Assembly: GCA_965644315.1 (NCBI GenBank)
Contig: CBFFRQ010000018.1
Location: 806,001 to 870,000, forward strand
Direction of reading: 5' to 3'
Source: Caecitellus pseudoparvulus
Taxonomy: Eukaryota; Protista; Bigyra: Bicosoecida
Length of the DNA stretch: 64,000 bases
Shown: positions 52,256-55,801 of the stretch, in pieces
Layout: the number at the start of each line of letters is the position of its first letter
Numbering within the stretch: position 1 is the first letter of the stretch
The notes under the pieces: generated by a model
Databases searched by the model: none
What the model saw: the letters and a program-made list of their open reading frames with translations, nothing else
What the model was told of the DNA's origin: nothing
Translations under genes and position numbers: made by a program

Positions 52256-52332
52256 GCAAGGAGCGCACGCCAGGCAGCCCTCTGCCAGGAACGCTGCAGC
52301 AGGCGCAATTCAAGCATGCAGTGCATTTGTCC

Positions 52333-53536
52333 TCACATGCCCTTGTTGTAGATGAGCGTCTTGACTGGGGCGCCGGTGCTGGGCTGGGTCAAGTTCTGGA
52401 ACTCGGGCTCCAGCCACGCGGGATCCACGCTGACCTCCTGGGGGAACAGCGCGATGGCTCCTGGCAGCGCCACCAGGATGCATGCCACGATGACGCTCAG
52501 CTCCAAGGGCAGCCCGACTGCTCGGGGTGCTCGGAGCAGGGCGCTCTGCAGGGCTGGCAGGCGCTTCAGAGCGTCAATGATGTAGGGGGGCATGAGGAGG
52601 ATAGGGATGGGCAGTACCACACGTGTGGCGGCTACCTGCAGGAGGCCCATGCGCCCCGCAGCCACGCTCTTGCCGTACACATGCCCCTCTTCATCGTAGA
52701 CGTCGATGCCGTTCAGGCCTTCCTTGTACCGCATGGCCATGGCGTTGAAAGCGCCGGCGGCGGCCACCGCCGTGAGGGGCACCAGCCGGCCGACTGCGGC
52801 CTTGAAGGCAGGCGAGCGGGCTGGGTTCGCGGCAACACGCTTCGCGACACGACCCATGGCGAAGGCCATGCCGCAAGCCAGCGAGCTGGCAGCAGCAAGG
52901 GATGTCAGGGCCTCAGTGTTGGTCACCTCCACCGTCGCGTTGCGGTTGGCGAAGTTGACGCCAGCGTTGTAAACCTGGTTTGCAAGCTGCCAAAACAACT
53001 GCGCCCCTGTGCTCTGGCCGAACATGACCATGCCCACGGCGATGGGGATGTTGGCTGGCGCGAAGAAGGACATGCGAAATACGTAGGGGATCTCCTCGCC
53101 CGTGTCAGGGTGCACCATGATGCTGTGGGTGAGGCGGGCCCGCCACATCTCGGCATCTGTCACGCCTGACGGGGGGATGTTCCCCCCTGCTTTGTACGCC
53201 TCTAGCTTCTGCACGGCATCTCGCAGCTTGTCTTGGGTGAGGAGCAGGCCCCTGTGTCGCCACAGAAGTAGAAGGTGGGTACAGATTACTGTGGAGGCAG
53301 CCACGGCAAGCGGCGAGCGGAGCTCACCCTGGGTTTGTAATGGAAATGAAGTGCTGAAACCTTCCCCAGTAGGTTGACATGTCAAAGCGGGGCTTATCTG
53401 CAGTGGGTCGGCAGCAGGACGTGTGGCCGACGGCTAGAGCAGCAGGTGCAGTGCACTTGACAGAGCAGCTGTGCCGGGCAACCTGGTACGCACCCATGGA
53501 GAACTTCGGGACATCATCGTCACCCCACAGAGGCAT
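52333..53536 (-). CDS. Sideroflexin (mitochondrial tricarboxylate/serine carrier family), 3 exons
   Basis: Introns 53398-53493 and 53252-53327. Motifs PRFDMSTYWGRFQHF..TNP, HPDTGE, FRMS, FWQLANQVYNAGVNFANRNA, MRYKE..GIDV, ALFPQ, YNKGM. Confidence 0.93.
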
Positions 53537-53746
53537 GGTTGGTTGTGTACGTCGAGGTTCTTGGAGCAGTCCTTGTAGAAACACAACGGACGTCGCGAAG
53601 CCACTCCGGCCAACTCTCAGCTGCCAGGCCCAGAACTGTGGCTTGCTGAAGTGAACACAAGCACAGCGGGCAGCGTGCGGTCGGGCAGCAAGGCGTGAAG
53701 TTCAGTTTTCGTGGATTGAATTATGTACTTTGCGCATAAGTGCCCG

Positions 53747-55801
53747 CTACAGGAAGAATTGCTGCACTACCACGGAGGCCAGCGCAGCCAAGAAAGACAG
53801 AGCAGACACCACAAGTCCAGCTTTGATGCGCACACCAAATATGTACCAGCCTGCCTGGCGGTGATGCATGGTGCTCACAATCAAGCTGCGGAGCTGTACG
53901 AGGCTTTCCGGCGGCGCGGCAAAGCCAGTCGGCACCCACGGCTGCCTCGCAGACAGTGTGGGAGAGTCCATGCCCTGGACTTGCACCCCCACTGCCTCAC
54001 CCAGAGCAGCCTTTGCGTCAGGTTGGCGAATGTGCAAGGCAGGGGTGGCTAACGGCTCGACTGGCTCTCTCACAGGTGAAGCACCTGATTCAATGAGCGG
54101 CTCAGCGGCAGGGGCCACGGCGGCCCTCGCTGAGGTGACCTGTATCGGGGGCTGTGGCGAAGAGGACTCCCTGCCTGAGTCTGCTGGCGTTGTTGCTACC
54201 GGGGTGGCATCTGTCCGTGCAGTGGGTGTGCGGAGCGCAGCTGCTGCCTCAAGCCACACTGTGCGGCGGATGGCCTGTGGCAGGGACATGGGCGCGTTTG
54301 CGAGGGAGACCACGACACGGTTGAACTGCTCTGTCACTTGAGAGGCAAACGTGAGGATGAGCAGCACCAGCAACATGGGGGAGATGACAAAAAACAACAC
54401 CCCGACGAAGTCTAAGATAAGCAGGGTATCTTGGGGCACGCTCTTGTCCCTGCGCCCGCCGAACAGCTCCATGAGCACCAACACCACGCAAACGGCAGAC
54501 GTGAGGATGAGCATGGAGAGGACGTCCGACAGGACGTGTGAGACACGCTTCGCGGCACGCGCTAGATAGCTGTGGTAGTCGCTGACAGCTTGCATCCACT
54601 CTTGCGTCCGGTGCTGCGCGTTAGCCTCAGCCGCTGCCTCGCCGCCAAGCGCCGCCTCTGCTGCGCCTACCTCGTGAGCCACCACCAGATCGCGCATGCC
54701 CGTCGTCACGGCTCGCTCCAGCCCATGAGCCAGTGCTTTGAACAGGCCTGCCTGCAAGATCAACATGAACAGGGCCAGCAAGGGGGACTCTACCGCAACG
54801 AGCATGCACAAACAGAACACGGGCAGCAGGATGCTGTTCACGATGGGCGGCCATTCCTGGCTGCCGACCAGCAGGTGTGCCCTGTCCTCCATAGCAAACA
54901 TCACGCAGGTGGCCACGAGTCCAACCCCAAGAACCAGAAAGATGGCCATGTAGATGCGGGAGTTCACGATGACATTGCGTCGGTACCGAGCTGCTTCCCG
55001 TGGGCTGAGGCGTTGCAGTTGCACCCAGCCCACCTGCAGGTGCCGCTCGAGTTGTGTCATGCAGGCCCACTCATCGCTTCGGACGAGCTTGGCCATTTCG
55101 GCGTCGGCTGTGCCGATGCGGCCTTTCAGGGACGAGGAGGCGCTGATTTGCCGCTTCACGACAGAGGTCACTGTGGAGAATGAGGCTGGCAGGAAGAGGG
55201 GGCGCCGGCGGTACGCCCACAGCACCCACGCAATGGTGATGTGAAAGAGAAACTGGCTTATGGTGAACATCGTTGTCAGTACATCCGTGGGATGTCGGGC
55301 CTCCGCAAGGGCAGGCAGCGGCAGGACAGCTGCGACCAGACTCACGCCCAGCATTGCAAACGCTGAGCACGGCATGCTGCGAAAGCACCAGCCGACGTGG
55401 AAGTCATCAGTGGGTGTAATCATCTCATCGTCATGACTTGCCGCAATCCACTGCGTGATGGAAGCGGTGTGGGCGGCGTGCTCGGCTTCACGCTGGTCTG
55501 CTTTCCGCTGGCGCTGGGCCACCTTCGCGGCTCCGAGCGCGGAAGCGGAGGGCGTGAAGGCCGGCGTGGCTTCGCCAGAGGAGGGGTCCTTCTCCGGCTG
55601 AATGTACATGGGGATGTCCCCCGTAATGAGGCTGCGGCGCGTGCTGCAGCAGCAGCCGTAGCACATGGCAGCCGTGTCCAAGGACGCCGAGTGTGTGTGC
55701 AGGCTGCTGACGAGGAAGGTGCGCAGCAGCACCGTAGGCTGCGCCTCCGAGCCGCAGATGAGCGCAAACTGCGCCGTCAGCTCTTCCTCTGCAGCGGCCA
55801 T
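53747..55801 (-). CDS. 7-TM protein, candidate gustatory-receptor-like (7TMIC/DUF3537-like) channel
   Basis: Seven hydrophobic helices, no signal peptide, long TM4-TM5 linker, and a split terminal helix GWYIFGVRI-KAGLVVSALSFLAALASVVVQQF ending at the C-terminus. Confidence 0.65.
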   Translation of the reverse strand: MAAAEEELTAQFALICGSEAQPTVLLRTFLVSSLHTHSASLDTAAMCYGCCCSTRRSLITGDIPMYIQPEKDPSSGEATPAFTPSASALGAAKVAQRQRKADQREAEHAAHTASITQWIAASHDDEMITPTDDFHVGWCFRSMPCSAFAMLGVSLVAAVLPLPALAEARHPTDVLTTMFTISQFLFHITIAWVLWAYRRRPLFLPASFSTVTSVVKRQISASSSLKGRIGTADAEMAKLVRSDEWACMTQLERHLQVGWVQLQRLSPREAARYRRNVIVNSRIYMAIFLVLGVGLVATCVMFAMEDRAHLLVGSQEWPPIVNSILLPVFCLCMLVAVESPLLALFMLILQAGLFKALAHGLERAVTTGMRDLVVAHEVGAAEAALGGEAAAEANAQHRTQEWMQAVSDYHSYLARAAKRVSHVLSDVLSMLILTSAVCVVLVLMELFGGRRDKSVPQDTLLILDFVGVLFFVISPMLLVLLILTFASQVTEQFNRVVVSLANAPMSLPQAIRRTVWLEAAAALRTPTARTDATPVATTPADSGRESSSPQPPIQVTSARAAVAPAAEPLIESGASPVREPVEPLATPALHIRQPDAKAALGEAVGVQVQGMDSPTLSARQPWVPTGFAAPPESLVQLRSLIVSTMHHRQAGWYIFGVRIKAGLVVSALSFLAALASVVVQQFFL

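Follow-up and report, generated by a model that had tools for sequence, protein, structure and literature searches.

Does a free-living marine flagellate encode a relative of the insect odorant and gustatory receptors? The question is raised by a gene at positions 53747-55801 on the minus strand of a 64,000-nucleotide stretch of the Caecitellus pseudoparvulus genome, the whole of which we call the window. The initial annotation had read its product as a seven-transmembrane ion channel (7TMIC) of the insect odorant receptor (OR) or gustatory receptor (GR) type, that is, as a member of the superfamily that comprises those two groups, the gustatory receptor-like proteins (GRLs) of animals and protists, the plant DUF3537 proteins and PHTF. 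Our analysis supports this reading. As judged from predicted structures, the protein is probably a divergent member of the 7TMIC superfamily by fold, and the evidence comprises the superposition of an ortholog model on Orco, OR and GR structures, the topology, the loops and the language-model neighbours. The whole of the explanation that we favour, a divergent 7TMIC working by the mechanism set out below, is likely as well. All features of the gene given below lie on the minus strand.

The gene is an uninterrupted, single-exon open reading frame (ORF) from ATG to TAG in the ORF list of the window and encodes 684 amino acids (aa) plus a stop; all peptide strings quoted in the initial annotation are present in the translation. 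It lies on contig C18 of a host genome of 30.6 Mb, 215 contigs and ~62% GC, where neither protein nor profile search found a paralog, so that the gene is single-copy. An exhaustive phmmer search over 1.84 billion cluster representatives returned a single true homolog, P0003 (736 aa, 33% identity, E 6.6e-40), besides one fragment of the window protein itself. A metagenome scan brought the family to three with L009:2881-5103, which has 741 aa and 62% identity to P0003. The two metagenomic orthologs are 33% and 30% identical to the window protein, and the alignment of the three spans from a conserved block ahead of the first transmembrane segment (TM1) to the C-terminus, with seven TMs in register. 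Across the representatives and the metagenome scan the family thus has three members only, all from marine assemblies or metagenomes, and none of them bears a name or accession. Strain variants on five metagenomic contigs (L001-L005) diverge by 0.8-0.9% from the window gene, with 13-15 synonymous codon differences versus only three nonsynonymous ones (S57N, T60A and H309Y). The ratio of nonsynonymous to synonymous polymorphism (pN/pS) between strains is ~0.07 (P = 1.6e-6 versus neutrality). Strong purifying selection acts on this gene, and the scarcity of nonsynonymous strain differences marks it as real.

An insert of ~110 aa rich in Pro and Ala had been noted in the loop between TM6 and TM7. 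Since the host genome has spliceosomal introns, we tested the idea that this stretch is an unspliced in-frame intron, and rejected it. The gene frame holds no stop across the loop, versus 3 and 5 stops in the other two frames; in the two closer orthologs the equivalent loop stands in an open frame, its indels keep that frame, and it shows 53% identity and conserved blocks; the two strain differences within the loop are both synonymous; and over 54135-54367, leading from TM6 into the loop, a contig of run X15 stays collinear with the genome and shows no joints. The insert (about aa 505-630) is real and coding. It was called atypical; a long intracellular loop 3 (IL3) is a known trait of DUF3537 proteins (Benton, 2020).

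A wrong gene model, whether the ORF arose by chance in GC-rich DNA or the loop is an intron, is hardly credible. Long chance ORFs are common in a genome of 62% GC, and many ORFs overlap in the window; GC content at third codon positions (GC3) is 0.62 in the loop, an ambiguous value below that of the rest of the gene; and the AATGCA hexamer is not present in the 80 nt past the stop (53667-53746, minus strand). Against these points stand the low pN/pS, the full-length orthologs at 30-33% identity, the in-frame ortholog loop with its indels and conserved blocks, and the unbroken contig over the TM6-to-loop boundary.

A Kyte-Doolittle scan (scan window 19) gave seven strong hydrophobic segments, where the initial annotation had placed them, at aa 147-165, 175-196, 283-303, 322-358, 424-444, 463-493 and 661-680. 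Their peaks range from 1.5 to 2.95, matching helices are found in both AlphaFold2 (AF2) models, and their positions are kept in the three members. TM1 (55307-55363) reaches 2.15 and is a helix in both models; TM2 (55214-55279), placed by hydropathy and charge counts, is followed by YRRRP on the inside; TM3 (54893-54955) reaches 2.55. The N-terminus is not hydrophobic, in agreement with the claim that a signal peptide is lacking. Lysines and arginines within 15 aa of the TM ends number 18 inside and 5 outside in the window protein, and 17/3 and 19/3 in the orthologs. From these positive-inside counts, a rule-based prediction, all three members are predicted to be N-in/C-out, as the initial annotation expected. 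Extracellular loops (EL) 1-3 measure 9, 18 and 13-18 aa across the members, and the intracellular loops (IL1-3) measure 86-120, 73-149 and 175-191 aa, all longer than the ELs. In the window protein the N-terminus comprises 146 aa, and IL1, IL2 and IL3 have 86, 73 and 175 aa.

These data bear on the alternative that the protein belongs to another seven-TM class, either an N-out G protein-coupled receptor (GPCR) or rhodopsin, or an N-in receptor or hydrolase of the PAQR/AdipoR type. Nothing speaks for it except that the TMs number seven and, in the PAQR case, that the orientation is N-in. An N-in orientation by the positive-inside rule excludes a GPCR topology, Pfam gave no GPCR or HlyIII/PAQR match at E up to 10, and no GPCR, rhodopsin or AdipoR chain was among the top 50 structural matches described below. 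We regard this alternative as very improbable; neither an N-out GPCR topology nor another TM count, which the initial annotation had named as grounds for abandoning its reading, was found.

The long TM4 of the initial annotation was also recovered. In both AF2 models TM4, TM5, TM6 and TM7 have helices of 66-73, 62-71, 40-46 and 53 residues, far beyond the thickness of a bilayer. DSSP assigned helices H320-385, H390-451 and H457-502 in the low-confidence model of the window protein, and the equally tentative P0003 model has helices of 73, 71 and 40 residues for TM4, TM5 and TM6. TM4 with its cytoplasmic extension (aa 322-385; 54647-54838) thus corresponds to a predicted 66-residue helix with a 73-residue counterpart in the ortholog model. 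TM5, preceded by its cytoplasmic extension (aa 400-444; 54470-54604; W..V..HS.L.R..KRVS.VLSD), falls within H390-451, and the extension shows 42-46% identity to the orthologs. TM6 with its extension (aa 463-502; 54296-54415; PML.VLL.LT..S.VT..F) has the highest hydropathy, 2.95, lies in H457-502 and is 43% invariant.

Conservation between the two clades of the family is highest in TM7a (62-69%), TM7b (~50%), the cytoplasmic extension of TM5 (~45%) and TM6 (43%), and lowest, at 21% or less, in TM1, TM3, EL2, TM4 and EL3. In the pattern described for 7TMICs, anchor and pore are conserved, and the half that varies is the one from which the ligand pocket of insect ORs is formed (Himmel et al., 2023); the sequence conservation profile of this family matches that pattern. 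The most conserved segment is the TM7a region (aa 631-659; 53825-53911; VQLRS.IVSTM..R.AGWYIFG). TM7b (aa 660-684; 53750-53824; hydropathy 2.38), the proposed pore-lining helix, ends 4 residues before the stop in ...VVVQQFFL.

AF2 is weak for this family because the alignment holds only three sequences. The model of the window protein, with a predicted local distance difference test score (pLDDT) of 40.8 and a predicted template-modelling score (pTM) of 0.33, was unusable. P0003:55-736, modelled without templates from the three-sequence alignment, reached a mean pLDDT of 44.3 and a pTM of 0.46, with 55-69 in the TM3-TM7 core. When this model was searched with Foldseek alone against 350,542 chains, OR and GR chains took nearly all of the top 17 places, at E 6e-3 to 0.2 and with low TM-scores. 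The whole TM1-TM7 packing of this low-confidence model superposes on Orco, OR and GR structures, and at its C-terminal end it lines up with the corresponding ends of Orco, Gr43a and BmGr9. The Orco structure was released in August 2018, later than the AF2 training cut-off. The comparison of an AlphaFold monomer by Foldseek that had been suggested has a divided outcome: the P0003 model matches OR/GR chains, but the window model matches generic bundles only.

Language-model features point the same way. The neighbours of both the window protein and P0003 were clusters of DUF3537, 7tm_7, DUF267, Trehalose_recp and GUR-5 (scores 0.86-0.94; 167-199 of 256 features). DUF3537 was the nearest named cluster, at 0.94 for the window protein (199/256 features) and 0.92 for P0003, and accounted for seven of the ten best named matches of P0003. 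We treat these scores as weak, supporting evidence because the recognition value in the Atlas, at 1958, does not reach the mark of 2300.

Several results weigh against assigning the family to the 7TMICs. No sequence method ties it to them. At E up to 10, Pfam gave no 7tm_6, 7tm_7 (PF08395), DUF3537 (PF12056) or Trehalose_recp match, whether for the window protein, for its TM core or for the two orthologs, and PDB sequences gave 0 matches both with the single sequence and with a three-sequence profile. NCBIfam scans found nothing relevant, neither the protein nor the alignment retrieved anything but the protein itself in word-index homolog searches, and a scan of bacterial and archaeal genomes found no relative. 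PF12056 and PF08395 had no match in the whole host genome, but the Pfam controls were silent too, so this counts for little. Matches to Pox_A9 (E 0.11) and RdRP (E 0.022) were dismissed as chance. On the structural side, the confidence of the P0003 model is low, the language-model value falls short of its mark, Foldseek and VIA with the window model found generic long-helix bundles only, with Gr64a at rank 40 (E = 2), and an ESM Atlas shape search with the P0003 model found nothing.

The C-terminus adds to these objections. Its description as of the TM7 type stands in so far as an amphipathic GWYIFGVRI lies just before the last hydrophobic segment, with the invariant, Gly-containing GWYIFG at the expected TM7a/TM7b junction; the split itself is not seen, as both models draw one continuous helix of ~53 residues. 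Similarly, the terminal QF likened to TYhhhhhQF is present as Q681 and F682, but the best register of the motif (T/S)Yhhhhh(Q/K/E)(F/L/M), LASVVVQQF, agrees at 2/4 positions only, and the ortholog C-termini read QQEL and QREL, so the motif is not kept among the three members. This motif is diagnostic, not definitive, and is absent in DUF3537 and many protist GRLs (Benton, 2020).

These objections feed the alternative that we are dealing with an unrelated, lineage-specific seven-TM protein. Its likeness to ORs and GRs would then be an artefact, arising from a low-confidence model together with features of a generic kind, among them helix count, loop lengths and composition. A model at pLDDT 44 and pTM 0.46, a window protein whose own model is unlike ORs and GRs, the lack of any sequence or profile match to a 7TMIC family, and the low recognition value and empty shape search of the Atlas are what such an artefact has in its favour. 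We consider it unlikely, set beside the superposition, the topology and the conservation profile.

If the protein is a divergent 7TMIC, how might it work? TM4, TM5, TM6 and TM7 would extend past the membrane as long cytoplasmic helices. If insect receptors are a guide, four subunits would be joined through a cytoplasmic anchor formed by the TM4-TM6 extensions and TM7a with its invariant GWYIFG, and TM7b would line a cation pore at the centre. The pocket that takes the gating signal would be formed by the outer half, where conservation is poor (TM1, TM3, EL2, TM4 and EL3), and the long, disordered, Ser/Thr/Pro-rich loops IL2 and IL3 may be regulatory. A complex prediction with two copies of aa 320-684 scored 0.00, which counts neither way.

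We propose only tentatively, from the analogy with insect receptors, that the protein functions as a ligand-gated channel. The rival view accepts the 7TMIC fold and denies a ligand-gated surface channel: the protein would sit in the membrane of an internal compartment, or serve as a scaffold or regulator, in the manner of the functionally uncharacterised PHTF and DUF3537 branches, and its cytoplasmic loops would be the working parts. Function has been demonstrated for no non-insect 7TMIC, which counts against our explanation and for this one, and the same holds for the large cytoplasmic mass, the outer loops of 9-18 aa that leave little extracellular surface, the single-copy gene as opposed to the expanded families typical of chemoreceptors, and the poorly kept TM7 gate motif. 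However, conservation is best in just those helices from which insect channels make their anchor and pore. Moreover, the pockets of insect ORs lie within the membrane, so a large ectodomain is not needed; the MhOR5 structure reportedly has its ligand pocket there. On balance this non-channel view is somewhat unlikely. The most specific version of the channel proposal is doubtful as it stands: a stramenopile-lineage, sequence-orphan 7TMIC of Class-A type whose homotetramers would act as ligand-gated cation channels in the cell or flagellar membrane of this bacterivorous flagellate, so that an external chemical cue (prey or a nutrient, for example) would be coupled directly to ion influx and to swimming or feeding. 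Chemosensing of prey or other chemicals is possible, and is without support in the present data.

Which known system does the divergent 7TMIC most resemble? It is closest in feel to the Class-A, DUF3537-like type. DUF3537 (PF12056), the plant and algal Class-A 7TMICs, is the nearest named family by language-model features, and both have a long IL3; DUF3537 proteins are described with a long IL3, and with a long IL2 in green algae (Benton, 2020). In both, the TM7 motif is largely unrecognisable and function is uncharacterised. DUF3537 proteins differ in having ~400-500 aa, and the window protein has no PF12056 match at E up to 10. Insect ORs and GRs (Orco 6C70, MhOR5 7LIC, AaegOR10 8V02, AgamOR28 8V3D, BmGr9 8VC1/8UVU, DmGr43a 8JM9 and DmGr64a 8JME) show a structure-aligned identity of 7-13%. 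They have ~380-480 aa versus 684 aa here, because of the 146-aa N-terminal region and the long IL1, IL2 and IL3, and they form families in animals, whereas ours is a single-copy gene in a unicellular marine flagellate to which a channel role is ascribed by analogy. Trypanosomatid GRL1 (Kineto7TMIC) is likewise a protist 7TMIC found by structure only and has a long N-terminal cytoplasmic region. That region carries MORN/WD40 repeats, whereas aa 1-146 of the window protein have no Pfam repeat match; for lack of a MORN/WD40 region the window protein is not a trypanosomatid GRL1, and no sequence similarity between the two was detected. PHTF, a Class-B 7TMIC, resembles the present family in having an IL1 longer than that of insect receptors (86-120 aa in our family), but its defining IL1 is far longer, and no PHTF-like cluster occurs among the language-model neighbours.

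Thousands of eukaryotic 7TMICs, including unicellular GRLs, and bacterial and archaeal ones have been published (Benton, 2020; Benton and Himmel, 2023; Himmel et al., 2023), in contrast to the three members of the present family among 1.84 billion representatives. The protein is hence a new, sequence-orphan member of a known superfamily and not a new kind, and would not surprise a specialist. It does indicate that whole sequence families with the 7TMIC fold still escape Pfam, profile searches and probably AlphaFold DB-based screens, because such a family exists only in metagenomes and new assemblies; an AlphaFold DB screen probably missed this one because no copy is named or accessioned. 7TMICs span insects to archaea, but functional tests have been confined to those of insects. 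In a free-living marine flagellate with a small genome and no co-receptor family, a single-copy, strongly constrained and probably transcribed 7TMIC would offer a simple system for the ancestral, non-animal function. Were the chemosensory channel reading true, a functional chemosensory 7TMIC would be on record for the first time in a non-animal.

The remaining parts of the protein are cytoplasmic by prediction. The N-terminal extension (aa 1-110; 55472-55801) is not conserved, at 7-12% identity to the orthologs; its GC3 of 0.85 favours coding, and it is touched by the contig of run X20. It contains a cysteine cluster, CYGCCCS (aa 47-53; 55643-55663), not found in the two orthologs and possibly a site of palmitoylation by which this region is tethered to the membrane. 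The pre-TM1 block (aa 111-146; 55364-55471; WI..HDD...D...G.C.R..P) has 28% of its positions invariant in the three members. It is possibly the counterpart of the TM0 re-entrant region; structural alignments start at or just before TM1, and TM0 is not among the 7TMIC criteria (Himmel et al., 2023). IL1 (aa 197-282; 54956-55213) holds 16 lysines and arginines and the conserved block M.QLERH...GW.QL..LSP. The Pro/Ala/Ser/Thr-rich part of IL3 (aa 503-630; 53912-54295), coding by the tests above, is mostly disordered in the model, with a pLDDT of ~30 and no regular structure.

Transcription of the candidate gene is likely. Run X16, which also contains spliced mRNA of the neighbouring gene, includes an exact 390-nt contig inside the candidate gene (54814-55203), and run X20, a cDNA library, includes a contig at 55435-55595; such contigs inform on neither transcript level nor strand. 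The neighbour encodes a sideroflexin (PF03820; 52333-53535, minus strand). It has a short first exon, with its ATG at 53535 and its end at 53494, followed by a 96-nt intron (53398-53493, minus strand; GTGCGT...AG) that is skipped exactly by contigs of runs X16 and X18. Hence splicing of sideroflexin is proven and these runs hold genuine mRNA of the host, and the mechanical 350-aa ORF (52333-53385) misses the true N-terminus.

AATGCA occurs at 52322-52327 (minus strand), a few bases past the sideroflexin stop. Over the whole window it is seen 25 times versus 32 expected, without overall enrichment. Downstream of the ortholog stop on L009 (5107-5186) lies a run of TGCA-containing repeats, CATGCATACAGTGCATGTGCATATACTTTGCATAA, reminiscent of an AATGCA-type end signal. 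Window DNA was also found in marine metagenomes of several studies, and three residues (S57N, T60A and H309Y) distinguish the metagenomic protein P0001 from that of the window; the window genome and the metagenomic populations are therefore distinct strains, ~0.9% apart. The organism of the window (L001 6510-7061) and the P0003 contig (L008 11238-11828) each have a CMS1-domain gene no more than a few kb from the 7TMIC gene, a remnant of shared gene order in two organisms whose orthologs have an identity of only 33%.
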